64,000 bases of DNA from Hyaloraphidium curvatum SAG 235-1 (GCA_025558095.1 JAIVFI010000026.1:496001-560000), one strand, 5' to 3'. Positions 6,604 through 56,097 are shown, counted from the stretch's first letter. Notes: generated by a model not told the origin, from the sequence alone. Numbers and translations are program-made.

Positions 6604-8119
6604 ATGGACGGGGTGCTCTCGCCGGCGGAGCGCCTGGCGCTGTTCCCGGCCCCGCTGCCCGAGCCGCGGCTGCTGCTCCCGGCCGCCCCCGAGGACGCGA
6701 AAGAGGAGCAGCCCGATTCCGCGCCCCTCGATTCGGCCGCCCTGCTCTCCTCGCTGCCCTCGCCTCTCCGACAACTTACGGCCGCCCAGCTGTTCATGGC
6801 GGCGCGTTACCTTGGCGGCTTCGACCGCGTGATGTCCACGACGTTCGCGCCGTCGACCGCCGTCGCGGCCGGGCTCGCGACGCTGGCGCAGCCGTCGCCG
6901 TTCTCGACAAAGACGCTGGCCGTCGGCATCGCCGGGTGCTGCCTGAGCGCCGCAGTGACCGTGGCGCTCTCCCTCTCGGGCGTCGTGCACCGCGGGCGCT
7001 TCTTCAGGCCCGCACGCGGGGCAGGCGACCTCTCGGGGCACCCGCTGGCCGTGTTTGCGCGGTGGAAGCAGCTGGAATGTTCCGGGAGCGCGGACGGCGA
7101 GGATGCCACGAAGCACCCCCAGACTATGCTAAGGCACGTGGAGCGCGACCCGGACTGCCCGTGCTCGCTCCCGTCGTGCGCGGGCGGGTTCCCGGCGCGC
7201 GCGGGCTGGCTCCGTCTGGCGGACCTCGCCATCCGCATCGGGCTGCTGTATGGCGGCATTGTCTTCATCTGGTTCACGCCCGCGTTCACCCTCGCGTGGT
7301 ACACGTGGTCGCACACCGGCCCCCGCGCTGTTCACGGCCCTGAGCGGTGGGTTCTCCGCGGCTTCGTGGCTCCGCGGCGCCTGGGGCTGACCACATCCGC
7401 CGGCAGTGGTCAGCGGTTTCGTCCTCGTCGTGTGCGTGTCGATCGCCTCGACTTCCTACAGCTTCCCGGCCCTGGAGCTCTCCCGGCGCCTGCAGACCCG
7501 CGCGCTCTCGGACGCCCTGTTGGAGTTCCTCGCACGGAGCGAGCGCGAGCTCGCTTCCTCCACCCAATCGGCAAATCCCCGCCTCCCGGAGCCCTACGAG
7601 CACCTATGCGCGCAGCTCCAGCTCCTCCGCGAATCGCGCTTCCCCAACTTCTCCACCTCCCGCGCCACCATCCTCCTCCATTTCGCCATCCCCTGCATCG
7701 TCATCGTCTCCAACATCGGCGCCGGCTCCTGCGTGCCCCTCTGGCCGGCGCTGATCCTGCTGTACGGCGGCGCGGTCGCGTTCCGCGACCTGCACGCGGT
7801 GGCGGCGAGCAACGGGCAGGCCGAGAGCGCCGCCGCGGTGCTCCGCCAGGGCGCGAGGGAGTCGCGTTCGCTCCTGGCGCGGTACCCTCCCGGCCCCGCG
7901 GCGTCGCGGCTGGCGCACCACGCCGCATTGATGGATTCCCTGGCGACCGCGGGGGGGAGGGCGAGGTGGCTTTGGTTCGAGCCCGGGGCGGGGGCGGCGC
8001 GGGGGGCGGGGGCGGCGCGGGCGGCGGGGCTGGCGGCGTTCACGGTCGCGGTGGGGTTGTGGAGCGTGTTGAGGGCGGGAGGGGTGTACCTGACGCCCGA
8101 GATTGCGTGCTGGGGGTGA
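6604..8119 (+). CDS. 7TM membrane protein, family member 1 (putative 7TMIC/GR-like)
   Basis: Two exons (intron ~7347-7413). Shares HPLAV..RW, H......CPC....CAG, W.P..TLA, GSCVPLW, HAAL and GLWSVLRAGG...TPE..C with paralogues at 12783, 52016 and 56097. Confidence 0.75.
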
Positions 8120-8323
8120 CGAGCACGCGGCGCCTCTGACGGAGCTAGGCAAATCTACGGTGCGAGCAATGAACGGGGCCCAAGTGATCAACGGACAATC
8201 GGCAATGGACAGTTTCGGACAAAGAATAGAATCGCAAAGCAAGATAGTGCCGTTTCTACCGGCGACAGTGCTGGGCCTCTTCACCTCCGCTGCCCCCTAT
8301 CGCCAACCGCACCCCGCCCGTCT

Positions 8324-9475
8324 TCACTCCCCCCTGGCGACCCTGAAGCAGCTCCCGAGGAACTCCGCCGCGAACCCGAGCGCCTCCTCCGCGCGCTTCT
8401 TCACCAGCGGGTCGTCGAAGTTGCCGCGGGCCGTGGACCAGCCGTGCCGTACGCTGCACGCGGGGAACGTCAAATGGGCGGGGTCGCGGCCGGGCGTGGG
8501 AAGGCGAAGGACGCACTCGGTGAACACCTTGAGCGGGACGGGGTCGAACTCGAAGGTCTTGGCGCGCGGGATGTGCGCGTTCTTCTTCAGCGCGGCATGG
8601 AACTCGGTCTGTCCCCGGGGTCGGATGGTCAGCAAGGCAGCTTCCTCGCTTGGGATGGCGGACGCACGAAGTCGCCGTCGTCGATCGCGCTCGGCAGCGA
8701 GGCGAGCGGCGTGCGGACGAGCTCGGCTTCCGGGGTCGGCAGCAGGGCGGGGTGGACCCCGACGACGCCGCAGAGGAAGGGGGCAAAGTCCTGGGAGGCC
8801 TTGACGGTGATGTAGCCGCCTGGAGGGGAGTTGGTGGAGGTTTCGGTGATACAGGAGCGCTCGGCGCCCACATGGACTGACCGTAGCAGAAGCCGACTAT
8901 GCCCACGTGCTCGACGCCGCGCTTCTTGAGCCACGCAAACACGTTCTCGAGGTCTTTCTTAACCACGGTGTCGTAGTTCCCTCCGCCGCCAAAGATGTAC
9001 GCGACGAGCTCTGTCCGGGAAGCTGTCGGCCTCCGTTCGCCGTCCTCCCGCGGCGCTCCGACCCACCTGCCATGAGGCTGTTCTTGAGCCCCATCGCGTT
9101 TCTATCCGACGGATCCACCCCGTCCGGAACAGCCGGCTCGTGCGCCCCCGCGCCCCCGAAATCGAACCTCTCGGCCGGGAAGGGCACCCCCCTAAACACG
9201 TCGGGCATGACCGCCACCCTCCCCGACGCCTTCGCCAAAAAATCGCACGCCATCTTGTTCTGCGGCGCGCCGTGTCCCAGGATGTCGTAGATGGCCACGA
9301 TGGCCTCCTTGGTGTTCTCAGCCGAGGGTGGTTCCGCGACGTAGGTGTCCAGGTCGCCCAGGCGCTCCGTGCGGCCCGCGGGGGTGTAGGCGGTGACGGG
9401 GACCACGACGGGGTTTGGGGCCGTCTGGCCATCGCCGGAGCCGCAGCATGCGGCGGGGAGGACCGAGGCAGACAT
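8324..9475 (-). CDS. Dienelactone hydrolase family protein, multi-exon
   Basis: N-terminal ACC, YDILG, VMPDVFRG, nucleophile motif GIVGFCYGG, GVHP and the catalytic His in VRHGW..RG. Confidence 0.85.
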
Positions 9476-10155
9476 GTCTCCCACGAGGTGGCGGCGGGCC
9501 GATCGCTGAGAGGTGCTGGAACGCGCATGCAGAGTCTGCCTAAAGGGTCTTGTCTGGTTCTTCTGTGTCATTTGTTTCGTCGAATTCCACCCCATCCACA
9601 CCGGATTCGGCGTTCTTCGCGACGGCATGGTCGGCTTCGTACGAGAGTTCGTACGCTTCGCTCGCGCAGGACCAGCCTAGGTCACAAATGCGTCGGCGGG
9701 CTTCAGGGTTGGGCCACGCAGAGGAACGACTCGTTGGTGGATGCAGGCCTGGCTCCTCAATCACCGCCATCAGCGCAAGCGCGCTGAGTTGCTGCTGCCG
9801 TCCCGCGCACGCACGCCTCGAATCCTGGCCATCCGGCCCAACAAACGATCAAATCCGAAGACCGGCAATACAGAACGCGAGTGGATCGGGAGTGAGCTTA
9901 GCCGCAAGGTCCCTTTGAATGTCTAGTGCAGGCTTACCGCAAGGCACAGGCCCCGTTGCCGATCGATTCGAGTCCCGAAGACGGCCACGGAGGGCTCGTC
10001 GCAGACCCGGATGGCCCATCACAACCACGTGGCATCATCGTACGCGCGGTTCGGAGCGAACAGATGCAAATTCGTTTGCGATCCGAGGTGGCGATTGGAT
10101 CGTGACTGACTTGACTGACTTGGGCTGGTGCCTCCCAACTCCCCCTCGTCCCGCG

Positions 10156-12557
10156 ATGGTCTTCGAGAGCGCGCAGCGGTGCTACGAGCTCGGCCTCCGC
10201 GCCGAATCCGGCGATGGCGGGGCCCGCGACCCCGGCCTGGCGCTCAAGTGGTACCGGAAGGCGGCGGACAAGGGCCACGCGCTCGGCCGGCTCGCGCTCG
10301 GGCGTTGCTTCGAACGCGGTGTCGGCACCAACGTGGACGCCGCTGCCGCAGTGGCGCAGTACCGCAGGGCGGCGGGGCAGGGCCTGGCGGAGGCCAAGAT
10401 CGCGCTGGGGCGGTGCCTGGCCGAGGGCACGGGAGTTGAGAGGGACCCCGCCGCGGCCTTTGCGCAGTACCTCGATGCGGCGCGCCAGGGCAGCGCCGAG
10501 GCGCAGGCGCTGGTAGGGATGTGCTATCGGCGCGGGAAGGGAGTGCAGGCCGACGCGGAGCAGGCGGCCAGCTGGTACCGGAGAGCTGAACACCATGGAA
10601 GCGTGATCGCGGCAAACGAGCTGAAGGACATGGAGGCCGAGGCAGCCAGGGAAGCCGAGGCTGCGGTGCAGAAGGCGAGGGACCTCGCCCGCATGGAGGA
10701 GCTCCGCAGGCGGGCCGAGGAGGCCGAGAACGTCGCCCGGGTCGTTGTGCGGCAGCTCAGCATGATCTCGCTTGGCGGGGCGTCCACCCGCAGTAGTATC
10801 CACTACGTGGCGCAGGTAAGTCATCGCGCACCGATTGCTGGTCCCTTGATTGAAGGAGCGCGTTCCAGGCTCGGCCGCCATCCAGCGTCACGCGCTCGGC
10901 CAGCCCCGTCGCGCCGGCTGCCGGCCCCAACGGATGGGAAACCAGCTCCATCTACGACGGCTCCGACGACGGCTACACCGACGAGTCCGGGACCCACTCC
11001 ATCCCACGCGCGGACACGCCGTCCGTTTTCGGGCCCTTCGATTCTCTGGATCGATACCGGTCGTACCGGACCGGCTCCCCCGACGCCCCGATCTCGGACC
11101 CTCGTCGGACGCCCTCCCCCGCCCCTCGACCCGCCTCCTTCACCCCAACCCACCGCGCCGCGTTTTCCTACCCCCCGGCGGACAGCACCGAGCTCGCGCT
11201 GGCGGAAGGCGAGCCGATCGAGGTCATCCGCGGGGGAGACGGCGGCGGCGAGGGGTGGCTGTACGGCCGGGACGCGCGCGGGGCCAGGGGGTGGTTTCCC
11301 GCGGCGTACGTGGAGGAGATCAATGATCCGCCGCCGCCGTCCGACGAGCGCAGCAGGCCCCGGCCGCGGACCGTGGACGAGGTGCTGCGGATCTACGACA
11401 ACAACGAGCTGCGCTTGTTCGGGGCGATCGGACGCGAGCAGAGGGAGCAGCTCCAGGGCATCCTCGATGCTGCGAACCTGCTCGATCTGGATTTGGATGA
11501 CTGCGTCCGGGCCGTGGGGGAGATGGTGCGGGCGGGGAGGTTCGACGGCGAGGCGGACGTCTCGGACGTGCTGGACTGGATGCAGTCTGGGGCAGCAGCC
11601 GCGGCAGCGAGCCACGGGCCCCCGCGCACCCTGTCGCCCCAGACCGTGGAGAACCCCCCTCCTCCTCCGCGGAGCCCGCCCATGCTGGTCCGGCGGGACA
11701 CCTTCGGATCGATCGACGGGCTGGACCACATTGCGCGGCACGCCGCGTGGGCCGGAGGCACCGAGCGCCCGCCTCCGCCGCCTCTCTTGGGCCAGCTTCT
11801 ACGACCTTTCGAGGACAAGGGGCTGCATTCCCCCCGGATCGGTCAGATCCGCCGTATTTTGCACGAGGCGCTCGCGTACGGGCACAACGCCTTCCACTGC
11901 GCCGAGGCCGTGGAGGCGATGCTTGGGAACGGGAGCTTCTCGGACCTGACCGGGCTGCAGCAGGTCCTGGAGTGGCTGCACACCGGGCAGGGATCCGTGG
12001 GCGGGGCCGGGCGGGGGCCCGCCGCGCCGGATCGTCCGGCTTCGCCCGCGCCTTCATCCGCAAGCTCCGTGCACTTGGCGATGCCGGAACCGTTTGAACG
12101 ATTCATCAATCGGAGCGACGAACTCGATGACTACCGGCTCCTCCGAATCGCTGACATTCTGGCGCGAGCGGAATCGCTGGACTTCGACGTGGCCGGCCTC
12201 GCGGACGCGATTGAAAGGATGCTGGACTGCGGCAGGTTCCGTGACGACACGACGCTGCAGGACGTCAGCATGTTCCAGCAGTTTGGCGAGGGAGCCGCCC
12301 GCGCGCCCGAGGCCTCGCTCCGGCCCCCGTCTCCTCCCATTCGCCCCTCGTCTGCGCAGTCCGCCGCCTCGCGGACGACGCAGGCCGAGCCCCGAACCTG
12401 CGTCATATGCATCTCCGAGGAGCCAGTGGCGGCGGCGCTGCCGTGTGGGCATCTGATCCTGTGCGAGGGGTGCAGGGAGGAGGGCGCGATAGGGTGCGGG
12501 GACAGTTGCCCGCTGTGCCGCAGGAGGGTGGACGGGGTGTTCAGGATATGGGTGTGA
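10156..12557 (+). CDS. Sel1-repeat + SH3 + triple helical repeat + C-terminal RING (C3HC4) protein
   Basis: Sel1 repeats (ALKWYRKAADKGH, LGRCFERGVG). After intron 10816-10868, an SH3 domain (AAFSYPPADSTELALAEGEPIEVI..GEGWLYG..GARGWFPAAYVEE). RING: CVIC..ALPCGHLILCEGC..CPLCRR. Confidence 0.85.
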
Positions 12558-12782
12558 CGATTGCGGGTGGTTCTTCCCCAGCTGGAGAGTGTACACTCTG
12601 GAGAGTCAATGACGTCAGTTCTAGGCACGAGGCATCAAGCGCCCCGATCGCAGTTTGATACTTTGTCGCAGCGGAGTGCCGAACAGAGCTCTTTCTTCAA
12701 CATCCTCGTAGGAAGGGCAGGAAAGTTCCTGAGAACCCTCGCCGGCTGCCGCCGCCTGCACCAGGTCTCTCGAATATTCTCC

Positions 12783-14345
12783 ATGGAGCTCCCCAAACCG
12801 GCACCGTTCTTCGCCGCGGAGACATGGCTCGCAGCGTTCCCTTCGCCGCCGCCGCCCTCCCGCGCGCTGTCGGGGGCCCCGCCTCCGCCCGACCCCGCGG
12901 CCGCGCTGCGGACCCCTCCGGATCCCACGGGGCGCGCAATCGCGGCGAATCTCGCTGATGTGCCTCTGCTGCGCGCCCAAGTGTCGTGGCGCTTCCTGCT
13001 GGGGCCTCTCATCGGGGCACAGATCATTCTGTGGACGGTGTACGGCGCTCTCGCTGGAGGGGCCGTTGCGACATCGTTGGGTTCGGATCGCGCCGCTTCC
13101 GGGCCGCCGGAGCTCGCGGGAGGGTTCGCGGCCGTGCTCATCATGCTGGTCTCGGCCCCCCTGGCTCACGTTGCCGGATACGTGTCCTTCTGGAGGGCGA
13201 ACGCGGGCGCGCTGGGGGTGGGTAACTGGCGACAGGCTCTCGTGGACCTTGTGTTCTTTCGACGGCCACATTGGATATCTAGCTCATACCGTGGATACCT
13301 TGCGACGTTCTTGGCATACACCGTGACGGTAAAGTTGAACACCGAGGCGCTCCGAAACCACGTCGAAGGGGAAAGGGGAGGATGCGCATGCCTTACCTGT
13401 TGTCCCGCGCGTTGGTCTCTTCGGACTCCGAGGAGGTCCCAGGATCGTCCTCAGAATCAGATGTCCGAGGTCCTCCGTGCCATGGGATATCATTGGCTCT
13501 TTGATGCCGTCTGGAGGGTGGTGTTCAGCCTTGCTTTGTTCCCCGCACTCGTTTGGACTCCTGCTGTGGTCCTCGGCTCCGTTTGGGCCACCTGGTACGG
13601 CATTCTGCTGTTTACCCTGGCGTCCGCGAGCTGGGCCCTCCTAGTCAGCCTGATTTTTGCTGCCTTTCCGGCGGACATGTTTGGCTCGCGGATCGTTGGC
13701 CGGGCCCGCCGGCGGCTCCTCCAGGAGGCGCTGAAATCCTTCCTGTCGCGCGTGCGGCGCGCGGTGAAGGACAAGGTGCCTTTCGAATCCCCCGAGGAGC
13801 TCTGGGACGCGGACGATGAACCGTACGTGGATGTGCAGGCGGCCGTGCAAGCCTCGTGGGCCGTCGACAGCATGTCCAGCGGCTTCATCCCCCTCGCGCT
13901 CCTCCTGATCCTCCTGAGTTACGCCGTTGCCGCCGCCGTCACCCTTGCCTCCGGTGCCTGCGTTCCCGCGTACGTCGTCCTCGGGGGCGCCTACCACTTC
14001 CTCATGCTCGTCCAGGACCTCTGGAGCGTGGCGGTGCGAAACGCCGAGGTCGCTGCGACCGCGGAGCTCTGCCTTGAGGCCCTTCAGGAGCTCCGCCAGC
14101 TTTGCGTGCTCGCGTCGCCCCCCAAAGCCCCCGCGGACCCGATCGCGGGGCATCTGGCGGCGCACGCGGCCGCGATAGAGGGGTTTGCCGCCGCGGCGGG
14201 GAGGAGGAGGGCCAGGTTCCTGGGGTTTGTCGTGGAGGCCGGGTCGGTGAGGGCGTTCCTCGTCACGGTAGCTACCGTTGCCTTCGCGTTTGCGGGATTC
14301 CTCCGGGGCTTCGGGGCGCGGGTGACGATGTCCACGTTCTGTTGA
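12783..14345 (+). CDS. 7TM membrane protein, family member 2 (putative 7TMIC/GR-like)
   Basis: Intronless 520-aa ORF with ~7 hydrophobic segments and motifs HVEG..GCACLTCC, WTPA, DEPYV, SGACVP, RNAEV, HAAAI, RFLGFVV...VRAFLVT and terminal ..STFC. Confidence 0.8.
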   Translation: MELPKPAPFFAAETWLAAFPSPPPPSRALSGAPPPPDPAAALRTPPDPTGRAIAANLADVPLLRAQVSWRFLLGPLIGAQIILWTVYGALAGGAVATSLGSDRAASGPPELAGGFAAVLIMLVSAPLAHVAGYVSFWRANAGALGVGNWRQALVDLVFFRRPHWISSSYRGYLATFLAYTVTVKLNTEALRNHVEGERGGCACLTCCPARWSLRTPRRSQDRPQNQMSEVLRAMGYHWLFDAVWRVVFSLALFPALVWTPAVVLGSVWATWYGILLFTLASASWALLVSLIFAAFPADMFGSRIVGRARRRLLQEALKSFLSRVRRAVKDKVPFESPEELWDADDEPYVDVQAAVQASWAVDSMSSGFIPLALLLILLSYAVAAAVTLASGACVPAYVVLGGAYHFLMLVQDLWSVAVRNAEVAATAELCLEALQELRQLCVLASPPKAPADPIAGHLAAHAAAIEGFAAAAGRRRARFLGFVVEAGSVRAFLVTVATVAFAFAGFLRGFGARVTMSTFC

Positions 14346-14553
14346 GTAAAGCGTTGCGGCCCGGGACGATGGCTAGGGCGGCGGCTCAGGCCTGGCTTTT
14401 GTCGAGGAGATGCTGATGCTGAGGAGACATTAGGGATGTAGTCCACTGAAGTGGTTTCAAGCTGCAGTCAGCAACCTGCTTCAAGCTGTGATCGCATTGC
14501 GTTCCGCAGGGTCGGCGTTCTGCCACGTTCGACAGCTCGCCGCCCTCTCCGCC

Positions 14554-17080: not shown

Positions 17081-17363
17081 GCGGCCCAGGGCCGGGAGGT
17101 GTACAACAGTCGCGGTATTTGACGGGATCTTGGTACTTTCGGTGCGATCTGGGGCTCCTGGAGGCGTGAAGGCGGGGGCGCGAGGTTCTGCCGATCGCTG
17201 ATCGCTGAGCGAGATCCTGGGACACGGGACGAAACGAGATAACGCCTAAGCTCAGAGGCTCTCGCGGCCTCTCCTCTTCACGATTCCCGCCTCTACTCTC
17301 CTCGTTCCGCGCGGAACCCTCCGCGCCCTCCCCCGCGCGCTCTCCCTCCCGCGCACGCGCGCC

Positions 17364-44194: not shown

Positions 44195-44228
44195 CCATCC
44201 GCGGACTAGCACCATCCGCGGACTAGCA
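44195..44228. repeat. 17-bp tandem duplication
   Basis: ccatccgcggactagca twice. Confidence 0.85.
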
Positions 44229-45032: not shown

Positions 45033-45589
45033 TTCGGTGGGTGTGGCCGATGGTGGAGGGCGGGGAACAGGCGAGGGTGAGTGGTTGGTGCGGACGAAAG
45101 CCCGGGGCGTCTAGTCATCGCAAGCGGAGCCATGACATTCGGCATCCGGACGAACACAGACGGCCGGAAACAAGGACGAACGTGGAAATAGCAACAATGG
45201 AAAATGGAACGTTTAAGGTCATTCTCAATCGCTACTACCGTAGGAACCTCCGCTGCTCGGCGTCCTGCAGCCATTCCGTTCACTGTTCCGCGTTCCACTC
45301 CGGGTCCGCCTTCCGCACAAGCATCTTGCAAAGACCAGATGGCAGATCTTTGGACAGGAATTCGGCGATGTCCTCCAGGGGAAAAGGCACGGGCCGCCTC
45401 CGCTACTCCCACAGAAAGTTGTGCCGCAACGTTGGCCCGGCGCGGGCTTGAACGGCAGCCTCGCAAATCAACGATCCAGAAGTGCATTGTTTTCGACCGA
45501 ATGCAGGCGCATGAGGTGCACCGGAGGCAACCATCGCACAACTTTGGAAGCGAACTTAGGAGGGTCTCCGTCCATAGGAACGTTGTGCT

Positions 45590-46030
45590 GCCACGTCGCC
45601 AGACCTTGAACAAAAGTCCATGGCCCTGGCCCTCGTGGCCAACGATGTCCTCGACGGTGTACTCCTGCTTGTTCCCAAGCACGTTGTCGTCCTCGATCTC
45701 CTCCTCGAACTCGTTCACAGGTTCCGAGAGATCGAGCTCTTCACCGGGGGCGAGCTTCGGGGCGCGTGCGTTCCACGAGCGCGTGTTGAAAGTGGCCGAC
45801 TCTCAAGGTTGGTGGCGCGCCAGCCGATCTACATGCACGTTAGTAGCGTGGTCGGTCTCGTAGACGTGCCTGCACTTCCAGCGATGCGGTAGGGGCCAAG
45901 ATAGCCAGAGAGGGACTTGCTCGGCCCGCCCTTTGCGAGCGCTCTGGTCCCCAAATGAGCACGAGATCGCCGGGGCGGAAGGTAATCGGGAGCTGGGTTG
46001 CGTTGGCCTTGGCGTTCCGAGTCTCCACCG
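45590..46030 (-). mobile_element. Degenerate Ty3/Gypsy (chromovirus) integrase C-terminus
   Basis: Fragments in different frames, in the canonical order: ITFRPGDLVLIW, PSKSLSGYLGPYRI (GPY/F motif), then chromodomain start EYTVEDIVGHEG..HGLLFKVW. Confidence 0.7.
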
Positions 46031-46934
46031 CTGCGGCCATCTTCTCGGCCACCAGACCATCATAGGCCGCCCGAAGTTGATCGCACTCTCCGACTCCCCC
46101 CCGGGCGGTTGCCCGTCCTGGCCGTCGATTTCGAGCACTCGACCGCCAACGACTTCAGTAGCACCCGCACCTCCACCTCCCCCCTCTTCGTTGACCGCGG
46201 CCCCCGCCTCGCAACCACCGAACCCCGCCGTCGCCCTTCAGAAGCTCCGCATCGCACGCCATCGCCCTGCGCGACCCGGAGCGCGCCATCCTCTGGCTCC
46301 CCGCTGGCCGCTCCGCGATCCGCGGCTGTACGACGTGCGCGCGTGCCTCCGCGCCCTCGGGGAGCGCAGCAGGAGGGCCGCCGCGGTGTCGGCAATGACC
46401 ACTGATGCGCTGGCGGGGCAGCGCACCGTGACGGGGGACGGGGGATGCGTCGGCGAGGCACTTCATGATGTACAATGAGCCTGTCGGCGAGGTCGGCGTG
46501 GGAGAGGTCGACGACGGAGGAGTTCCCGCGACTACTACCCACGCAAGCCCGCAGGGAACAGAGTTGCCCGTGTGGCGCGTGGACACGTACGTCGGATGCG
46601 GTGGACCCGCTTTTGAAGCTAACTTTCATGGACCCATCGGCCAGGGATGCTGCGTTCGGCCGCGAATTGCAGGCACCCGGTCCCAAATCTGAGCGCGAGA
46701 ACAATACAGCTGATTGAATGTCGACCGAAGCGCCTACTGCTGCAGCGGGTGCTCCATCTCCGGGCGCGCAGCGATGCCGGGCCCATCGGGGGCTTTGCGT
46801 CTGGGTCGGCGGCCGGCCGGCCGGCCGGACCCGGCCGCACCCAGAGAAAACCCGGCAGGCGCGCCCCCTACCGCCTGCCGAATCCGCGCCTCCGACACCT
46901 GCCGTCCCGTTCCGCCCAAGAGAAGGAGCCCGCG

Positions 46935-48732
46935 ATGCCGGCCGCCGCTCCCCTCCCCCGCGCCGCGTGCGCCGAGGTCTGCTGCCCCGACACGGTGTGT
47001 TGCGACGACCCGAGCTGCGCCCCGAAGGATCCGCGCGGGCACCGCCGCGGCGATACCCGCGCCGGCCGCAAGGGTGCCGCGCGGGCGGCCAGACCCCGCA
47101 GGGCCGCCGTGCACAAGTCCCTCCTGGCCCTGTGCCTGTGCGTCGGCGTGGCCGCGTGCGCCCTGCGCGCCCTGCCCGGGGCGCACGCCCACGGCTCGCA
47201 CGGTGCCCTCAGGCCCGGTTTTGTGACATGCGACACCCGCGAGGACGGCACGGAGCACTGCGAGGAGGACAAGCAGGCCCTGGAGCTTCACTGCTCCGAA
47301 GTGACCGAGGACGAGTACAACCTCAACCTGCACATCGCCAACGTCTTCATCCAGGTAAATGCACCGCGTGGTGGTCTCCGGTCGTCCCGTGGCATTTGAG
47401 GCCACGTTTGCATTGCTCGTTCTAAAGGGACGTCCCAATCCTCGCCGACCAGATTGCGGTATCATTCTCTGGATGCCTCATCCCAATCCTTTCGAGGCGG
47501 TTTTCGTTCCTCAGGGTGTCCGAGTTTGTGTGGTCGATGTTCAAGCATTTCGGCGCGGGCATCATCTTGGCGACCGGGTTGGTGTTGGGACGGACCAGGG
47601 AGGACCTGTGGCTTACCGATTGCTTCCCTTCGCCCGCCCGCAGCTTCATCCACGTCTTTGCACCGGCCTACGGCAACCTCTCTAGTATCTGCCTCTCCGA
47701 CTTCTGGCTCGAATACGGCTCCTGGGCCGGTGCCTTTGCCATGATCGCCGTCCTCTTCACTCAGCTGATCCAGACCCTAGCCGTTTCGTACCTCAAGGCT
47801 TTCCACCAGCACCAGCACGGTCCTCTCTCAGCGACAGCCGCGGATATGTCCCGGCAGCAAGATGCTTCCATCGCGAAGGAGACCTCGCCCATCGGGGACA
47901 ACTCTAGTGTTATCTTGGAAGCCAACACCGACATGGGCAGGGACTTCACCTCGGGGTGTCACGCCGGTGCCAATCTCAACGCGCAGGGGCCAGACATTGG
48001 AAAGCTAGCAGGCGAACTGGTGGAACTGCAAGAGGCCACGCACACGCACCATCTGCTGCTGGCGCACAGACAGCGGCGCCAGATCACCGTGTACGTGCTC
48101 GAGATCGGGATCGCCACGCACTCGTTTATCATCGGCATGGCGGCGGGGGTTTCGTCGGGGCCGGAGCTAACTGCGCTGGTGATCGCGCTGGCGTTCCACC
48201 AGGTAAGTGTGTGAATGGGTGCCCCGCGTTCCTCGTTGCTCAACTATGTTCGTAGTTCATTGAAGGTATTGCGCTTTCTGCAACCGTGCTGGACGCCGGC
48301 TTCAAGACCAACTGTGCGCGAGTCCCTGTTGCCTCCCTTGCCGTATGCTGACGTTCTACGGCGATCACAGTCCAGCCGATTTTCATGGTCATGTTCTTCA
48401 CCTTGACGACCCCCCTGGGCATCGCCACCGGCATTGCCATCCACTCAGTCTTTGTTCCAAACTCCGAGACGACGCTGCTGACCCTCGGCATCATAGGTGA
48501 AATGCACTTTCCGTTGCTCTGTGTTCGGAAATGCTGGCTGACATGTTCTCGGGGCCATGCAGACGCGATCGCCGCCGGCATCCTAATCTACGACTCGTGC
48601 GTCAATCTTCTCGCGGCCAACATGACCAACTCGGCCTACTTCATGCGGCTGAGCTGGCAGCGCAAGGCGGTCTCATTCCTCGCACTGTGGTCGGCCGCTG
48701 CCATCATGTCGGTCATCGGCATCTGGGCCTGA
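46935..48732 (+). CDS. ZIP-family zinc/iron transporter (Zrt1-like) with Cys/His-rich N-terminal extension
   Basis: Motifs YNLNLHIA, FKHFGAGIILATGFIH, LEIGIATHSFIIG, FHQFIEG, TTPLGIA.G, AGILIY and MSVIGIWA; ~5 introns. Confidence 0.9.
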
Positions 48733-49083
48733 GTGAGGCTCCGCGCAGCGGGGCAGAGCATGTGGGAAGAGGCGGGGGTAAGCCGGGTCGCGGTCCGAGG
48801 GATGCTGTGCGGGCGACCCTGCGCCTAATAGGAGCGATCGCTTAAGCATCCGAGGCGTTCAAGTCTCTGTCCGAGGCGACGTGTCGGATGGCCATCCAAG
48901 GCTGAGCAGGGGAACTTGCAAGTAAGATTGTCGAAGACCATGGTTAGCCGTCCAGACCGTCAGACCGCACTTGAGGGTCGAAATGGCTCGAGACGTTGGA
49001 GAGCAGCAAACTGGAAAGACCTTGCCCCGCACCTCCTTGCTGGGCAGCGAGTGGCCACCTCGTGCGCATCTCTAAGTGACCTA

Positions 49084-50600
49084 TTACATCAAAATGTAGA
49101 CCGCCAAGCTGGCCTTGAAGGCCCCGCCCTGGAACCGCGCCTCTGTGTCAAGCTCCTCCCACGTCCGGCCCGTCCGGACGAAGTCGCCGTTGTGCAAGAG
49201 CCCATCGTGCTGCACGACCTCCTCGACGCCGTCGATCAGGTCCCGGGGCGGGATGCCAACGGGCGTCTCGATGGAGGCCTCAATGTCGAAGCCGAGGATG
49301 TCGCGCTGGAAGGCCGGCTTACGAGGGCCTTGGAAAATATGTCGACGGGTCCGCCCTCGTAGCCGTTCGGGCAGGTGCTCTTGCGCAGCTCGGGAGGGCG
49401 AAGGCTCTGCATGGCGAGACTGACGAGGCCGATCGCACCGTCCGCCGTCCGCTCGGCAAAGGGAACGGCCGAGGCGAAACAGAGCATGGCCTCGGGGGCG
49501 GGGTCGTGGGGCGAGCAGCGGGGGAGGCGGCAATCAGAGCAGCGCTGCCGCATGATGACGTGGGTGATGAGGCTCGCCGACTTGAAGATTTGGAGGAAGC
49601 CGCAGATGAGGCTGGCGAACTTGCCCGCGCCAAAGTTCTTGTCGCCCGACTGGCCTCGTAGCCCGAGTCGAGGGCGTCCTGCGACTTGCGCACTAGACGC
49701 TAAAGCGCCCGACGCCCCGCCTCGGTGATGCAGTGCCAGTAGACGTTGTGGCCTCGACGCGTGAGACGGCGGAAGAGTGCGGGGATGGCGCAGACGACGG
49801 TGTCGGCCGGGCAGCTCAGGTTGACGTTGTTAATCCGCGCGACGGCACTGGAGAGCTCGGAACGGAGCTTGAGAGGGCTCGGCCCGACGTCGAGGGCACG
49901 GTGGGTCCGCGATCGCATGGCCTCGACGGCCTCCTCGAGCTCTGCGTCGTCGTCTGCTTCCGGTGAGGCCCGCCTCAAGCGCGAGGGGCCAGGAACGCTC
50001 TTGGAAGCGCGCAAGGGCGTCGATCTTGGGACCGAGCAGCGAAGGCCTCTCGACGGCCCGTGCCTCGCGGCGGATGGGCACCCGGGTCTGCTGCCTCTTG
50101 CGGGGCGGCGTCCGCGGGGCAGAGGCCGCCGTTGAGGGCGGTGTCGAAGGCGGCAGCGTCGGCGGGGACGGCGACTCATCCACCATAGACCGTCCATCTC
50201 CGTTGTGCAGCAAAAACGCGGCGGCGAGGCTATGGTGGCAGGGTTTGCCACGGCAGGTCCGCTTGAGGCACGCGCGGTCGATGACGAGCGAATCGTGCGG
50301 CTTCTTGTCGGTGCCAATCTCCCTGAAGACATAGAGGCCCTCGGGGGAGAGCTTGACGAGCCCGGCGTAGAAGGTGGCACACGCCTTGCGGAAGCGCTCC
50401 CGTTCGGCAGCAGTCGGTTGGCTACGGAAGGACGCGTGCTCAGCAAGCCACCAGAGGCAGTGATCGAGCCGAAAGAAGTCATGCACCACGCCCATAGTCC
50501 CGTCGCCGAGGATGTTCGCAATCGGGTCGATCTGGGCCTCGGCAAGGTTGTTAGTGTTCATGCCGAAGCGGTCGACGAGGCGCTGGGCAGGAGGCCCAGG
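49084..50600 (-). mobile_element. Degenerate Mutator-like (MULE) transposon remnant
   Basis: TNNLAE motif followed by a degenerate SWIM finger (C..RTCRGKPCHH) and a PHD-like fragment (VVC...VYWHC); frameshifts and stops. Confidence 0.5.
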
Positions 50601-51093
50601 GGGCTCGAGAGGAAGCCGTTCCGGGAGGAAGGTGATGGAGTAGCAGGCTTCCCAGATCCCTCGCAAGCAAGCGTTCGATCCTCGTCGCCCAGCGATGAGC
50701 AGCTCGAACGACAAGCCCGTTGGGGCCAAGTTCGACGGCCCCAACTGCCCTGGGCGCGCACGCTCGGGGCTACCCTCAAGGAGCGCGGCGTCGACGGCTT
50801 CAAGCTCCTGACGCCCCTTTCCCCCGCACACCCGTGCCGCGACCCCGGCGCCTACGTCTTGGACGACCCCGACTTCACGCTCGTGCCCAGCCGCCGGCGG
50901 GAGCAGCATCTCGAGGCCATCGGCCTGCTGCTCACCCCCGACGGAGGTGACCTCATGACGAGCGCTCAACTGATCCAAGTCGCTAGGGCTGCGCCGGTGG
51001 TGCGGGCCGCGATGACCGAGATGGCCTTCTCAGTCCTGTTGAAAGAAGAGTTGTGCGAAGGTTCGGAAGAGCCGGCCACGCGTGCCACGGCAA

Positions 51094-51963
51094 TCAAGCC
51101 AACGGCTCGCGGAACACTTCTGCAAAGGGCAAGTAGTTGTTCGGTCCGTACCCGGCGTGGAAGACGGGAAACACGACGACGTCGAGGTGATCCGCTTTCG
51201 TGAGCTCCTCACGGTAGATTCGCGCCACCTCCTCGGCCGGGTTCATGAAGGCGCCGCAGCCGAACGCCCCCAGGCTGGCGTGGCGGATGCCCTTGGCGCG
51301 GAGCGTGGAGATCTGCGCCCGGATCCTGCGGCGGCACTCGTCCGGATCGAACGCCTTCCCTCCCCGCAGGTCGTCCGCCGCCGAACGGAGCTCGTAGAAC
51401 GAAAAGACGTCGTCGTCGGCGAGCCAAGTGTACCCCAAATCGGCCGCAGCCCTGTCCTCGGGCCCTCGCACGCAGATCCGCGGCTCTGTGTCGAGGTAAA
51501 CCTCCCCGTCCCCGCCGCTGATCAACCAAGTCATCTCCCCCGTGTAGAACCCATTGTCAACCATCTCGGACGCGTCGAGAGCCAAGTGGCAATCTGTGCG
51601 CCGGAAGATGTTCTCTTCTTGAGCAACCATTCCTTCAAGGTATCCCCCGCCTGGGTGGTACGCGTTTGCCATGTTCAGGACCGCGAAGCGCGCGCCGTGC
51701 TCCTTCGTGGCGCGGAGCGCAGCGACGCCCCAGTCTTCCTGCGTCACTTGTACGATGGGAGGGCCCGGCCGAGGAGGATCAGGGCCCCCGCGGGCTCGCG
51801 CCCAGCGCGCCAGGTTGGCCTCAGCAAGGGCGCGGAAGTGGTCGCGTCGGGCGGCCAGGGCGGCGACAGTCTCGCGGAGGACGGCCCGGCGGCGTGCAAA
51901 ATCGGGGCGCGAGTACGGGAAGAGGGAGGGGTCGCCTTCATCGGGGATGGGAGGGCCGGGCAT
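51094..51963 (-). CDS. Microbial-type poly(ADP-ribose) glycohydrolase (DUF2263/TIGR02452 macrodomain)
   Basis: VLNMANAYHPGGGYLEGMVAQEENIFRRT (GGG-X6-8-QEE signature) and LGAFGCGAFMNP; intronless. Confidence 0.9.
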   Translation of the reverse strand: MPGPPIPDEGDPSLFPYSRPDFARRRAVLRETVAALAARRDHFRALAEANLARWARARGGPDPPRPGPPIVQVTQEDWGVAALRATKEHGARFAVLNMANAYHPGGGYLEGMVAQEENIFRRTDCHLALDASEMVDNGFYTGEMTWLISGGDGEVYLDTEPRICVRGPEDRAAADLGYTWLADDDVFSFYELRSAADDLRGGKAFDPDECRRRIRAQISTLRAKGIRHASLGAFGCGAFMNPAEEVARIYREELTKADHLDVVVFPVFHAGYGPNNYLPFAEVFREPLA

Positions 51964-52015
51964 TACAGGCGAGGTGGACGGGCAGCGCACTTCTTCCACA
52001 ACCGAAACCACTGCG

Positions 52016-53428
52016 ATGGACGCCGCCCCTCCCTTGCGCCTCTCTGTCCCGGAACAATGCTCCCTTTTTCCGGCCGAAGCGGACGGCCAGGGCGCGGTTG
52101 CGCCGAAGGACGACGGCGAAGGCGGCGGAAGAGACGCCAACCTCGACACGGCCGCCCTCATTGCGGGCCTCGAACAGGACCCGTTCCTGCGGTTCACCGC
52201 CCGGGTGCACCTTGCGCTGGCCGTCTACGCGCGGTGGAGTGGGGTGGTGCTGGCCACCTGCGGGGGGCTCGATACCATCTCCACCGTCGCAGTCTGGTCC
52301 TTCAACGGGATCACCTGCACGTTCAGCACCCGCCATATGGCCGCCTACACTGTCGCCGTCGCGCTGTGGGCTGCTAGCCTTATTGTGCAAGGTGCTTTGG
52401 CCAGACTGGCCACAATAAGCTCCTTCGTTGGGGAACCACAGGCCTCCGCCCACCCGTTGGCGGTGCTCGTGCGGTGGAGGCACCTGGTCGCGGACGGCTC
52501 AGCCCTCGTCGCGCATGTGCCCGGTGACAAAGGCTGCGCGTGTCCCCGGGCGGAGTGCGCTGGCTCCCTGCCGAAGCAGGCGGCGTTCTTGCGGGCACTG
52601 GCCCCGATTGTTCCCTTGGCATTGAACATCCTTGGGTCGCTGTTCCTTTTCTGGACTCTGGCAGTCACCTTTGCACCCCTCCTGTGGGGTAGCGCGGCGT
52701 GGACCGCCTACTTCGTGGCTTGCCTCTCCTTCATAATCATCATTCATAACGTCCCCATGCACATAATCTTGGTCTGCAACACCCCCAGCACGGCGCTGCT
52801 CCGACTTCAGGGTCGTCTCCGCCACAGGGCTGTCTCGCTCGCCCTCGGGGGCGCCATCTCCCGACTCGAGGGCTGCGTGGCGGACGGATCCACGCTGGTC
52901 GTTCCGGCCGACGAACCCTACGTCTCTCTGCATTTTGCGCTCGCCAAGGCCTGGCCCTCGGAGCTTGCACACATGTCGGCTGGCCGAGCAGGAGTGATCG
53001 CTCATCTTTGCGTCCTGGCCGTGGTTGGGGTGATCACGGCGTCCGCCTCGTCCTGCATTCCCCTCTGGATCTTGTTCGTGATGCTCCTCATCCTTGCAGT
53101 TTTCGTGCAGGAAATGTTCAGCATCGCGGCCGCCAACGCCGAGATCGACCGCATCGCCGCGCTGTACCGCTCCTCCCGCGCCCGCATCCTCGTCGCCATC
53201 GCGCGACACCCGCCTCCCGCCGTCGAACGCGCGCTTCGGAACCACGCAGCGCTGCTGGAAGTCTTCGAACGCACCGAGGAGATGCAGGGTGCCTTCCTGG
53301 GTTTCAGGGTGCGGTACTCGGTCGTCCGCGGCTTCCTCGCAACGATGCTGACGATCGCGGTGGGCTTGTGGTCGCTGCTGCGCGGCGCCGGAGTGAGCTT
53401 TACGGCGGAGACGGTGTGCCCTGGATAA
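52016..53428 (+). CDS. 7TM membrane protein, family member 3 (putative 7TMIC/GR-like)
   Basis: 470-aa intronless ORF with seven hydrophobic segments; motifs HPLAVLVRW, HVPGDKGCACPRAEC, DEPYVSLH, SSCIPLW, ANAEI and GAFLGFRV....VRGFLATMLTIAVGLWSLLRG. Confidence 0.85.
   Translation: MDAAPPLRLSVPEQCSLFPAEADGQGAVAPKDDGEGGGRDANLDTAALIAGLEQDPFLRFTARVHLALAVYARWSGVVLATCGGLDTISTVAVWSFNGITCTFSTRHMAAYTVAVALWAASLIVQGALARLATISSFVGEPQASAHPLAVLVRWRHLVADGSALVAHVPGDKGCACPRAECAGSLPKQAAFLRALAPIVPLALNILGSLFLFWTLAVTFAPLLWGSAAWTAYFVACLSFIIIIHNVPMHIILVCNTPSTALLRLQGRLRHRAVSLALGGAISRLEGCVADGSTLVVPADEPYVSLHFALAKAWPSELAHMSAGRAGVIAHLCVLAVVGVITASASSCIPLWILFVMLLILAVFVQEMFSIAAANAEIDRIAALYRSSRARILVAIARHPPPAVERALRNHAALLEVFERTEEMQGAFLGFRVRYSVVRGFLATMLTIAVGLWSLLRGAGVSFTAETVCPG
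53105..53403 (+). repeat. Left arm of a 299-bp inverted repeat (pairs with 54819-55117)
   Basis: Equal lengths, and translations in multiple frames are identical between the arms. Confidence 0.9.
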
Positions 53429-53545
53429 ACATTTAGTCGTAGTCGTGCAAGTATGTTGGCCGGTTCGAACGATTCGAGTGTTCGATGGGGCTTCAGAGTT
53501 TCGGGCCGAGGGCAGGGGACCGCCGACTCCATCCACCGCACCACC

Positions 53546-53641
53546 ATGGCCTCCCCGGCCGAACAAACCCTTTTCCTGCTGGCCGACGATATCAACAAAG
53601 GTGCCAAGCCCCTCTTGCGCGGCCCCGGTTGCGGGGCCTGA
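53546..53641 (+). pseudogene. N-terminal fragment of another 7TM-family paralogue
   Basis: MASPAEQTLFL resembles the paralogue N-termini (LSPAERLALFP; VPEQCSLFP; AERHALFL); stops after 31 codons. Confidence 0.35.
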
Positions 53642-54793
53642 CCTGCCGTGGCGCTGGCTGCCCGCCGCACCACGTCCCGGCGGCTGTGCCAGGCAACCTC
53701 CAGCAAGCCCTCTCCCGCTCCGTGGACGGCGACGGGATCAACGCCAAGGGGACGGGACTGAGCTCCATGTTCAGGCAAGAGGAGTACAGCGGTGCGGACT
53801 GCACGCGCGTTGGCCACGTCAGCGCGATGGCGCGTGCTGACAAGGCAATGCTGCGACGTGCACCGCACAGGGCGGACGGACGTCGAATCCTTCCTTCAAG
53901 GTCCATCTCTCCCATCTGTTTCGCCGTGCCGACCTCACGGAGCCCCCCGGCCCAGGCCTGATCAACCAGCAGGCTTCGATCGCCGCGGACCCCACCACCA
54001 TCCGCCGCGACGGCGACACCTTCCGCGCTCAGGTGACCGTGCAGCAGGACTTCACCCGCCGGTCCGATTCGTTGCTTCTGGACGGGCAGAGGGGGGCCCT
54101 GGAGGCGGGTGGACCGGCGCGGGGTGGTGATTGCTGTTGATTGAGCGGATTCCTTGACGTGCAGGTAAAGATGGAAGGGGATAAGATCAGGAGCATCGCA
54201 TACGTGCCGGACGAGGAGACCAAGCCGATGCTGCACGGTGGGTTGGGCCAGCCGATCGGTGGGAACGGTTGAAGGCACCACTCACCTAATAGATGCGCAC
54301 ATCTTGACGCACAGTAATCAGGTCACGAATCCAGGAGACGAACAAGCAGCTTCGGCAGTCGATCGAGGATTTCGAAGCGGGGAAGAAGGGGGAGGTGCCT
54401 GGTTCTGGCTGAGGCGTGTCTAAGCGGAACAGGGATACTTCGTCTATTGAATGACAAGCCCACCAAGGACGTCATCCACGGCGTCCTTAGCTTCTGTTTC
54501 CACGTCCACGGCTGTCCAGTTTCTCCTTCGCCGCTGCTCGTCCGGGTCTCAACCAGCGGGGCGACACGTCTCAAAATCCTGCCCTCTGCCTGGCTGGTCG
54601 CCCGCCGGCTTCACGGTCTGACAGACTTTGGCTCTTGGCTCGGCATCCCGCGGCGGACTAGGGCGCAGAGATCCGGAGAACGGCATTCGAGTACCGGTGC
54701 CCCGCGCCGGCATTTTGCGGCTATCCGTGCCTAGACGATGGGATCTCCGTTATCGCACAGTCCATCAACGAGGCCAGAGACCACAGTGGACAT

Positions 54794-56097
54794 CTATTCT
54801 GGCTGCTGCGTCTCAGCAGTAAAGCTCACTCCGGCGCCGCGCAGCAGCGACCACAAGCCCACCGCGATCGTCAGCATCGTTGCGAGGAAGCCGCGGACGA
54901 CCGAGTACCGCACCCTGAAACCCAGGAAGGCACCCTGCATCTCCTCGGTGCGTTCGAAGACTTCCAGCAGCGCTGCGTGGTTCCGAAGCGCGCGTTCGAC
55001 GGCGGGAGGCGGGTGTCGCGCGATGGCGACGAGGATGCGGGCGCGGGAGGAGCGGTACAGCGCGGCGATGCGGTCGATCTCGGCGTTGGCGGCCGCGATG
55101 CTGAACATTTCCTGCACCAGGATGGCGAGGATGCACAGGCAGAGGAACACGATCCACAGGGGAACGCACGAGGAGGCGGAGGCAGCGATCACACTGTTCA
55201 GGACGAACACGCACAGGATGACGACCAGACTTGCGCGGCCGGCCGACATGTACGTCAGCTCTGAGGCCCATGCGCTGGCCAGGGAGAAATGCAGCGGGAC
55301 GTAGGACTCATCCGCGGGCAGGGCAGGGGCGGATCCGTCCGCCGCGCAGGCCTTGAGCCGCGAGATGGCACCGCCCAACATCAGATCAACGGCCCGGTAG
55401 CGGAGACGACCCTGCAGCCGGAGCAGCACCGTACTGAGAAGGGGAGCGAAAGTGACCGCCAGCGTCCAGAAAAGAAAGAGGAGTGCGAGGACCTCCAACG
55501 CAAAGGGCCCTATCGGAGCGAGTGCGCGCAAGACCCCGCCTGCTGAGGAAGAGACCCGGAGCAGGAGACGAGCGGCCAGGGGCAGAGTTTGTCGTCTGGC
55601 ACGTGTGGAACAAGGGCTGACGAATACGAAATCAGGCGCCGCCAACGCACGAGCACGGCCATTGGGTGGGCATCAGCCTTTGGTTCAGTGACGTTTGCGC
55701 CCATTGTGGCCAGCATGCCGTACAACCCCAAGGCGATGGCGGAGCAAGACCATAGAACGGCGGTGGTCCTTTACGCGGCCATGTGGCGGGTGCTGAAGGT
55801 GCCCATGATTCCGATACCAGACTGCGGCGGTGGGCACGGTCCCGAGCGCCGCGCTGACGGCGAGCCGCGCGCCGTTCCACCGCGCAAAGCCGGCCAGCGC
55901 AAGGTGGATCCGAGTGACGAACCGCAGGAAACCGTCCTGTTCCAGCCCGGCAAGCAGCGCCCGCGAGTCGAAGGGCGCGTCTCCCGCGGCCCCTTCCCCG
56001 TCGTCCTTGGCCGCCTCTGCCACCGTGCCGCTCTCGTCGCCGAGAAAAAGGGCATGCCTTTCGGCCGGAGTAGGCGGAATGGCGGGGAGGCCTCCAT
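54794..56097 (-). pseudogene. 7TM family pseudogene (inverted paralogue of 52016-53428)
   Basis: Collinear homology broken by ~3 frameshifts, an in-frame TAA (RHMAA*) and a ~33-codon deletion removing TM4. Confidence 0.85.
54819..55117 (-). repeat. Right arm of the 299-bp inverted repeat
   Basis: Reverse complement of 53105-53403. Confidence 0.9.

Follow-up and report, generated by a model that had tools for sequence, protein, structure and literature searches.

We propose that the receptor-like genes of the window, the 64,000-nt stretch analyzed here of DNA from the aquatic, early-diverging fungus Hyaloraphidium curvatum, belong to a very large family of likely chemosensory channels with the fold of seven-transmembrane ion channels (7TMICs), an explanation that we consider the best available and reasonably probable. 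That these proteins conduct ions, are gated by ligands, and serve chemosensing is inferred from the fold and from the pattern of evolution. Four subunits would join through an 'anchor domain' composed of helix 7a and the parts of helices 5 and 6 that extend into the cytosol, around a central pore lined by the very conserved last helix (7b). Small molecules would open a cation channel by binding a pocket that each subunit forms within its membrane-embedded bundle.

A profile derived from 84 family members matches exactly four loci when searched with hmmsearch against the whole 64,000-nt window: two intact copies, one transcribed but frameshifted copy, and one decayed copy. Pairwise BLASTP backs their paralogy, with identities of 27% (E 9e-20), 33% (E 1e-22), and 72% (E 9e-132). 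The three paralogues named in the preliminary description are thus real, and those at 12783–14345 and 52016–53428 are intact as it had claimed, whereas the gene at 6604–8119 is frameshifted, a point on which genome and RNA contig agree. Gene 2 (12783–14345, plus strand) is a single exon encoding 520 aa (profile match 12789–14342, 347 bits); among the copies in the window it diverges most. Gene 3 (52016–53428, plus strand), likewise a single exon, encodes 470 aa (profile match 52022–53425, 477 bits).

Gene 1, also on the plus strand, is covered by RNA contigs and is transcribed and spliced. Its profile matches span 6589–7314 and 7406–8113. Exon 1 (6604–7346), delimited by the profile, frame translations, and the RNA contig, encodes the protein from its N-terminus through helix 3 and into the beginning of helix 4; profile positions 8–239 are matched up to nucleotide 7314, and the remainder lies in another frame. 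A 60-nt GT..AG intron (7347–7406) follows, supported by its sequence and by the joint in the RNA contig (7345 to 7406, skipping 60), and its splicing removes an in-frame TGA at 7388–7390. Exon 2 (7407–8119) encodes the rest of the protein, helix 4 through the C-terminus (profile positions 250–486, 189 bits). The frame shift falls within 7309–7320, adjoining a run of five C, and genome and RNA contig show no differences over 7224–7345. Since both carry the shift, the transcript is in frame for the first 3.5 helices only.

The fourth locus, at 54794–56097 on the minus strand, is a copy of gene 3 that has decayed and lies inverted, tail to tail with it, in agreement with its earlier designation as a pseudogene. 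Four profile pieces within 54809–56083 lie in three different frames, which requires at least two frameshifts, and 34 residues, corresponding to about helix 4, are deleted. Sliding identity reveals a gene-conversion tract of ~295 nt between the two copies (inverted repeat I1): 53117–53410 on the plus strand of gene 3 is 100% identical to the reverse complement of 54812–55105 inside the pseudogene, while the flanks are ~73% identical. A further fragment reported at 53546 proved to be a mere 15-residue resemblance, with no positive-scoring profile match in 53429–54793.

Beyond the window, the D..C.C....C codon pattern, which detects 60 of the 84 known members, yields 402 matches in the genome against 51 for the reversed control. 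This corresponds to ~350 family loci, or ~490 once sensitivity is corrected for, and we estimate the H. curvatum family at about 350–500 loci, bearing out the proposed lineage-specific expansion. Searches of the fungus's own genome returned 97 family matches and 724 first-look candidates, and clustering at 50% identity gave 211 clusters. The copies are mostly intronless and dispersed over all large contigs, with tandem groups visible among the genome matches; they are 25–35% identical, and mean column identity is ~25%. Gene 3 and a 79% identical copy just beyond the window have an overall dN/dS of 0.28, ranging from 0.05 in helix 7b and the tail to 0.60 in helices 1–2, and helix 7b is also the most conserved membrane helix across the 84 members. 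The family evolves through tandem duplication, gene conversion, and pseudogenization; tandem copies, the decayed and frameshifted copies, and the conversion tract together confirm the birth-and-death mode suggested earlier. The family has members in another organism as well (SRR26194948), where their neighboring genes are ordinary, and in metagenomes. This occurrence outside H. curvatum is new.

Structure prediction points to the fold shared by insect odorant and gustatory receptors (OR/GR), animal and protist GRLs, and plant DUF3537 proteins. AlphaFold2 models of gene 3 (pLDDT 92.6, pTM 0.91) and gene 2 (pLDDT 88.0, pTM 0.89), which are ~22% identical to each other, rest on an 84-sequence alignment of paralogues from essentially one species. 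Against 48,161 PDB cluster representatives, VIA-align places insect OR/GR chains at ranks 1–6 for gene 3 (Z 11.2–12.8, 299–351 residues aligned), followed as next non-OR/GR rows by helical bundles of ~110–180 residues at Z ≤10.2; the top 14 for gene 2 are all OR/GR (Z 9.7–12.3). Unrelated helical bundles trail by a modest margin (Z 10.2 versus 12.8), and by the tool's own note helical proteins can reach Z 12–13 through a common arrangement. All Foldseek matches with probability >0.4 are insect GRs or ORs (best E 1e-2, TM 0.37–0.45), with transporters and GPCRs at TM ~0.1. Searched by shape, the ESM Atlas returns a cnidarian cluster (TM 0.57/0.66), DUF3537 (0.58/0.62, 360 aa), nematode GUR (0.52/0.59), and insect GR 7tm_7 (0.50/0.50) before the following row falls to 0.27. 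In support of the 7TMIC-like fold claimed in the preliminary description, insect OR/GR channels are the sole whole-chain matches in the PDB, with GR, GUR, and DUF3537 proteins among the ESM Atlas matches.

The models comprise helix 0 and seven membrane helices, in line with the roughly seven hydrophobic segments noted earlier, in proteins of ~480 aa across the family. The expected loop layout is likewise present, with outside loops of 1–4 residues and helix 2–3 and 4–5 loops of 60–75 residues. Over the 84 members, the N-terminus, helix 0, and inside loops together contain 31 Lys and Arg and the outside loops and C-terminus 0.6, so that by the positive-inside rule the N-terminus is predicted to lie inside and the C-terminus outside, the inverse of GPCRs. 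DSSP assignments on the gene 3 model separate helix 7a (401–418) from helix 7b (434–457) by a 15-residue loop that includes two short strands and locate cytosolic extensions at 259–290, 301–320, and 373–396. Judged on the structural definition of the 7TMIC superfamily (Benton 2020; Himmel 2023), the predicted proteins have its length of ~350–500 aa, seven helices, N-in/C-out topology, inside loops longer than outside loops, an OR/GR-like fold over the whole chain, a last helix split into 7a and 7b, and the long cytosolic anchor-domain extensions of helices 4–6.

Several features are the family's own. The motifs quoted in the preliminary description correspond to its consensus (EPY..LH, C-I-P, AA.N..I, and FLGF.V....R.T..T...GLWS.LRG), to which an N-terminal F...EWLALFP can be added. 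The cytosolic helix 2–3 loop is folded and carries an invariant H-x3-D-x2-C-x-C-x4-C motif, probably for metal binding. On the outside, two conserved cysteines, C347 (invariant) and C468 (83 of 84 sequences), probably staple the C-terminal tail to the helix 5–6 loop.

A tetramer model built from four copies of residues 226–470 of the gene 3 protein is consistent with self-association through the anchor helices, as had been anticipated. Its ipSAE is 0.61 (runs 0.61, 0.61, and 0.62) versus 0.00 for the best of three controls, in a test calibrated on pairs, which the predictor could also pass by having learned solved OR/GR tetramers. Among calibration proteins of solved structure, 21 of 30 one-chain pairs but 0 of 23 single chains attained the mark; for eukaryotes the figures were 17 of 29 and 0 of 30. 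The runs have at least 67% of contacts in common (partner pLDDT 66). Confident contacts map to 299–307, 382–398, and 405–422 in the cytosolic anchor helices, and one copy contacts two neighbors, as in a ring; helix 7b has none among those listed. Conservation at the predicted interface is no higher than at other cytosolic positions (0.40 versus 0.44, p = 0.5).

No sequence method in our searches ties the family to any 7TMIC or other known family, and the relationship to 7tm_6, 7tm_7, or DUF3537 for which profile comparison had been suggested did not emerge at this level. Pfam assigns no family to the window proteins at E up to 1, apart from a weak, sub-threshold, and unrelated DUF7311 match on the 7406–8119 piece, and, at E ≤10, detects no 7tm_7, 7tm_6, Trehalose_recp, or DUF3537 match in any of the 84 members. 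The family profile recovers no OR/GR chain from PDB sequences at E up to 10. PF12056 (DUF3537) and PF08395 (7tm_7) have no match anywhere in the genome at E ≤1, in a search whose control genomes contain no DUF3537 or 7tm_7 member by which to gauge its sensitivity. The insect GR helix 7 motif, T-Y-(5 hydrophobic)-Q-F, is not kept in the column profile of 434–457 (at most one of four positions): T443 and T446 are conserved, with no Y at +1, Q at +7, or F at +8.

Among the closest structural parallels are insect GRs (Bombyx mori Gr9, Drosophila Gr43a and Gr64a; Pfam 7tm_7), the top Foldseek matches for both models (8vc2, E 1e-2, probability 1.0). Between BmGr9 (PMC11100771) and our family, the helix 3–4 loop measures 1 versus 1 residue, the helix 5–6 loop 5 versus 4, helix 6 45 versus 47, and the 7a–7b gap 14 versus 15. 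Both groups have helix 0 plus seven helices, an inside N-terminus, a cytosolic anchor bundle, a most conserved last helix, and large, divergent, tandemly arrayed repertoires; the tetramer likeness is predicted on the family's side. They differ in that sequence similarity is undetectable and the GR helix 7 motif is absent, and the BmGr9 helix 2–3 loop has ~5 residues versus 60–75 with the H/D/C/C/C motif. Unlike insect GRs, the family has the conserved outside cysteines and the F...EWLALFP motif, and is fungal and mostly intronless. Insect ORs/Orco (MhOR5, AaegOR10, AgamOR28; Pfam 7tm_6) give the highest VIA-align scores (MhOR5 Z 12.8 over 335/377 residues, AaegOR10 12.3) and are alike in topology and, on the evidence of the model, in tetramer contacts through anchor helices. 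However, their helix 3–4 loop is long (28 residues in MhOR5 versus 1), and we identified no conserved counterpart of the Orco co-receptor. Plant DUF3537 proteins (language-model feature score 0.93 in addition to the ESM Atlas match) and unicellular GRLs, including chytrid Spizellomyces GRL1, are alike in length range, topology, and long inside loops, yet number 1–12 per species (one per Spizellomyces, six in Thecamonas, 4–12 in plants; PMC7746228) versus hundreds in H. curvatum.

The most serious competitor to a chemosensory family, and a clearly less probable one, is that these are true 7TMIC relatives with another job, as internal-membrane channels or transporters, in self/non-self recognition, or as scaffolds resembling the poorly understood PHTF-like proteins. 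The organism is not known to have a swimming or otherwise motile stage, which makes the use of a large chemosensory set puzzling. A long, folded inside helix 2–3 loop is a feature of Class-B PHTF-like 7TMICs (Himmel et al. preprint, 10.1101/2023.08.30.555482), which, compared by description only, resemble the family in this loop and in the 7TMIC fold; PHTF proteins are nevertheless of much greater length and are not known to form large repertoires. No fungal, protist, or plant 7TMIC has a known function (PMC7746228). The protein is also hardly exposed outside, given its minimal outside loops, although this is no argument against sensing, because the MhOR5 ligand site lies inside the membrane bundle (PMC11100771). 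Several hundred very divergent paralogues speak against this competitor. A housekeeping role is hard to reconcile with a pattern of evolution like that of insect chemoreceptors, in which helices 1–2 change fastest, the pore helix is most constrained, and genes are born and die in tandem.

Were the likeness to insect receptors instead convergence, or a modeling artifact of long helical bundles, the family would be an unrelated, novel one. We judge this improbable. The lack of any sequence link, scores that are moderate for helical proteins (Z 12–13, Foldseek E 1e-2), and the essentially single-species alignment behind the models lend it some weight. Yet models of two distant paralogues lead to the same matches, three independent search methods top-rank 7TMIC families only and over nearly the whole chain, and the topology is inverted as in solved receptors, which the split last helix with its 15-residue hairpin, the single-residue helix 3–4 loop, and the 47-residue helix 6 also fit. 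That the family is mobile-element cargo or a selfish repeat, rather than host genes under selection, is very unlikely: hundreds of mostly intronless copies over all large contigs, some of them broken, might suggest it, but the copies are very old and divergent with no recent burst, and close copies show the constraint described above. Moreover, the 1.4 kb that separate gene 3 from its inverted copy match nothing else among the fetched loci, 51500–56500 contains no repeats besides the gene copies themselves, and the members in SRR26194948 sit beside ordinary genes. The proposal that these are GPCR-like receptors with an outside N-terminus, which draws solely on the helix count and a chance-level adhesion GPCR profile match (E 0.15), is already contradicted and has next to no probability; charge distribution favors the opposite orientation, GPCR structures score TM ~0.1 in Foldseek (rank 39), and none is among the best 50 VIA-align rows.

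A chemosensory channel family of this kind would be far larger than the handful of insect-receptor-like genes per non-animal species reported in the literature searched. If our interpretation is correct, its many divergent paralogues would constitute a broad chemical-sensing repertoire for the fungus.

The proteins of about 480 residues and seven helices encoded at these loci belong to a known superfamily, the ancient channel superfamily of the insect smell and taste receptors, in which they form a new branch that is hugely expanded and structurally modified. Sequence searches made no such connection. Pfam comparisons with the window proteins and all 84 members of the family alignment, and comparison of the family profile with PDB sequences, gave no link to a known family, and the DUF3537 and 7tm_7 models had no match in the H. 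curvatum genome. Structural comparison placed the family. AlphaFold2 with paralogue alignments produced models of the proteins of gene 3 (52016-53428, +; pLDDT 92.6, pTM 0.91) and gene 2 (12783-14345, +; pLDDT 88.0, pTM 0.89). In an exhaustive comparison of the gene 3 model with 48,161 PDB representatives, the top six were insect odorant or gustatory receptors (Z 11.2-12.8, 299-351 residues aligned; 335/377 for MhOR5), and the next rows from outside these receptors were helical bundles of ~110-180 residues. For the gene 2 model, rows 1-14 were all insect odorant or gustatory receptors. Foldseek agrees, with probability up to 1.0 at an E-value of only ~1e-2, and everything else lies at TM ~0.1. 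The nearest shapes in the ESM Atlas were a cnidarian cluster (TM 0.57 by query, 0.66 by cluster), plant DUF3537 (0.58, 0.62), nematode GUR (0.52, 0.59) and insect GR (0.50, 0.50), after which TM falls to 0.27. The 7TMIC-like fold proposed in the preliminary description is thus the top PDB match of both models, and we regard this reading of the predicted structures as well supported.

Membrane orientation agrees with that proposed from the sequence. For the 84 members, the Lys+Arg total is 31 for the combined N-terminus, helix 0 and inside loops (three), and 0.6 for the outside loops plus the C-terminus. This charge bias places the N-terminus inside, as in insect receptors and opposite to GPCRs. 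We therefore reject a GPCR-like topology. The helix plan tracks the boundaries of BmGr9 (PMC11100771): the helix 3-4 loop is one residue, the helix 5-6 loop four residues (five in BmGr9), helix 6 47 residues (45) and the helix 7a-7b hairpin 15 residues (14).

Other features set the family apart from insect receptors. Between helices 2 and 3 lies a confidently folded inside domain of 60-75 residues (residues 137-196 of the gene 3 protein, nt 52424-52603) bearing the motif H-x3-D-x2-C-x-C-x4-C, in which H167 and C176 are invariant and D171, C174 and C181 near-invariant across the 84-member alignment. This motif may be a metal site, perhaps for zinc. Of the outside cysteines, C347 in the helix 5-6 loop is invariant and C468 in the tail is present in 83 of 84 members; their segments pair as short strands in the gene 3 model, and a putative C347-C468 disulfide would join them. 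The N-terminus carries a conserved F...EWLALFP motif, a further difference from the insect receptors.

All three runs of a tetramer model of residues 226-470 reached an ipSAE of 0.61, and the highest-scoring of three controls reached 0.00; this pass may reflect memory of solved relatives. The runs shared at least 67% of contacts, with a partner pLDDT of 66. In calibration on pairs, the mark was reached by 21 of 30 solved one-chain pairs and by none of 23 single chains. Confident contacts involve the cytosolic parts of helices 5 and 6 together with helix 7a, one copy touching two neighbors, and this predicted ring corresponds to the anchor-domain ring of the insect channels. Contact positions showed no greater conservation than the remaining cytosolic positions (0.40 versus 0.44, p = 0.5), and interface conservation therefore adds no support for a tetramer.

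On the same contig, 378 nt past the window end, C26:560378-561787 holds a further intact copy with 79% identity to gene 3. Between gene 3 and this copy, dN/dS is 0.28 overall, 0.05 in helix 7b and the tail, 0.13-0.17 in inside loops 2-3 and 4-5, and 0.60 in helices 1-2. Of the membrane helices, 7b is the most conserved across the family. Insect receptors are known to show the same pattern, with constraint on the pore helix and rapid change in the outer helices.

In all six frames of the window, the 84-member profile matched four loci and nothing else, in line with the paralogues first recognized from the sequence alone. Three of these had been described as intact, which holds for gene 2 (520 aa) and gene 3 (470 aa), both single uninterrupted exons, but not for gene 1 (6604-8119, +), which is frameshifted in both the genome and an RNA contig. 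Searched one exon at a time, gene 1 matches the profile in two frames, at positions 8-239 up to nt 7314 and 250-486 from nt 7406. The sequencing run that supplied these contigs is labeled 'RNA?', and we take it to be spliced RNA because seven canonical GT..AG or CT..AC joints occur within the 6 kb examined. In gene 1 its contigs skip 60 nt (7347-7406), an intron whose removal takes out an in-frame TGA at 7388-7390; since 60 is a multiple of three, the frame change persists after splicing. The family match in the upstream frame includes W-Y-T-W and ends at ~7308, and helix 4 resumes at 7319 in the next frame. The spliced gene is colinear with its closest paralogue, the protein P0084, with 34 versus 32 residues between landmarks. 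An assembly error could have produced such a shift, and is ruled out because the RNA contig equals the genome over 7224-7345 without gap or difference. Gene 1 is transcribed and spliced, and its in-frame product is limited to the first 3.5 helices.

The locus at 54794-56097 (-), read earlier as a pseudogene, faces gene 3 tail to tail and is indeed decayed: four pieces match the profile, spread over three frames, and some 34 residues around helix 4 are missing. Over its final ~295 nt (54812-55105) it is 100% identical to gene 3 at 53117-53410, whereas adjoining sequence is ~73% identical, a sharp edge as expected for recent gene conversion. A proposed fragment at 53546 did not hold up, being only a 15-residue resemblance to the N-terminal motif that lacks profile support. 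A mobile-element origin of the family was also considered and was not supported. In the public annotation (protein P0005), gene 2 is fused into a 1205-aa model from which residues 154-226 of the open frame are dropped; the two matched stretches are 95% and 99.7% identical, and the fusion and dropped stretch are probably a gene-model error.

Several other genes lie near these loci. Beside gene 1, a minus-strand gene at 8256-9628 shows four short introns in the RNA contigs (8453-8517, 8608-8668, 8818-8881 and 9010-9067, with CT..AC joints), and its largest open frame has no Pfam match. The gene at 9919-12557 (+) encodes Sel1 repeats (E 4e-21) and a C-terminal RING finger (E 3e-11), with a GT..AG intron at ~10813-10865 in RNA contigs. 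Divergent from gene 3, with ~55 nt between the likely start codons, is a gene at 51094-51960 (-) with a microbial-type poly(ADP-ribose) glycohydrolase catalytic domain (PF10021, E 9e-16). A 983-aa open frame at 56270-59221 (-) is very rich in Asp, Glu, Gly and Ser and contains repeated short motifs.

The expansion suspected from this window extends across the 31.9-Mb genome (55 contigs, ~68% G+C). A one-protein query gave at least 97 matches with 90 of 724 first-look candidates scored, and phmmer, run in full against 1.84 billion cluster representatives, returned 211 clusters at 50% identity. For a genome-wide count, D-x2-C-x-C-x4-C was searched as a 33-place codon pattern with the reversed pattern as control, giving 402 occurrences against 51, an excess of ~350 loci; the pattern recovers 60 of 84 known members, which corrects the estimate to ~490. 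Tandem groups are common among the matches, for example four within 13 kb on contig C1 and five within 33 kb on C5. At G000:C1:1447054, C2:357778, C2:415788 and C7:695826, the pattern matches include an identical or near-identical 33-nt string that contains an in-frame TAG; it is probably a dispersed repeat unrelated to the family that inflates the motif count slightly. Word-index homologue searches with one protein, an alignment or a metagenomic member as query returned 1-4 proteins each, which we ascribe to the method's limited reach for such sequences, not to absence.

The family is also present in at least one other organism, related yet well diverged. Among 30 of the phmmer cluster representatives that were traced, 21 are from H. 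curvatum and 9 from ENA or JGI metagenomes or the Logan assembly of run SRR26194948. Two non-H. curvatum members lie on SRR26194948 Logan contigs (G+C 53-55%) and others on ENA and JGI metagenome contigs. The contigs examined (L033:10001-11569, L034:1160-2870, L031:295-837 and L032:508-2021) have 52-55% G+C, score 148-428 bits against the family profile and retain all signature motifs; L031 and L032 are ~32-34% identical to the H. curvatum members compared, and L031, the sole contig searched, showed no DNA similarity to H. curvatum. Of the two SRR26194948 members, one is complete and has a single exon (P0138, 522 aa). The L032 copy is interrupted by TAA and TGA codons in frame and changes frame once, so it probably has short introns. 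A scan of metagenome contigs with a single metagenomic member as query gave no match. In the SRR26194948 organism a family member adjoins a divergently oriented MIOX and amine-oxidase gene pair (L034:2960-7124), which recurs in the same arrangement in H. curvatum (G000:C9:106036-109534) at 44% and 53% protein identity, with no family member within 8 kb to serve as a positional orthologue. The conserved pair suggests that this organism is a diverged relative of H. curvatum. Relatives in another organism and in metagenomes indicate that the family is not peculiar to a single strain.

Hyaloraphidium curvatum is a non-flagellated freshwater fungus of the Monoblepharidomycetes. Non-animal members of the insect-receptor channel superfamily have no known function. 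In the literature searched, a species has between one and twelve such genes: each of two Spizellomyces chytrids has a single GRL, Thecamonas and Vitrella have six apiece, and plants have 4-12 DUF3537 genes (Benton et al. 2020, PMC7746228). A preprint by Himmel et al. (10.1101/2023.08.30.555482) traces 7TMICs across the tree of life, with fungal ones restricted to Chytridiomycota and Blastocladiomycota, and describes a Class-B type with a long helix 2-3 loop. In the Hyaloraphidium literature and 7TMIC papers searched, the genus was not linked to the superfamily, and we found no published repertoire this large outside animals.

By reasoned inference, the family would function as channels in chemosensation. 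More tentatively, and with somewhat less than even confidence, we propose that the 7TMIC proteins of this non-motile fungus, several hundred in number, are ligand-gated channels with a new cytosolic metal-binding regulatory domain, and that they make up a true chemosensory system that arose independently of the insect one and is common to at least one other lineage. If so, large odorant-receptor-like repertoires would be a recurrent solution outside animals, and the 7TMIC fold would more than once have given rise to a large, fast-evolving repertoire. Some 350-500 divergent, selected and transcribed copies would occupy ~2% of a 32-Mb fungal genome, with the cysteine-rich cytosolic domain and the outside cysteine pair as new structural features. 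H. curvatum would then offer a genetically simple system for learning what non-animal 7TMICs do, and a microbe in which their ligands, gating and assembly may be tested.
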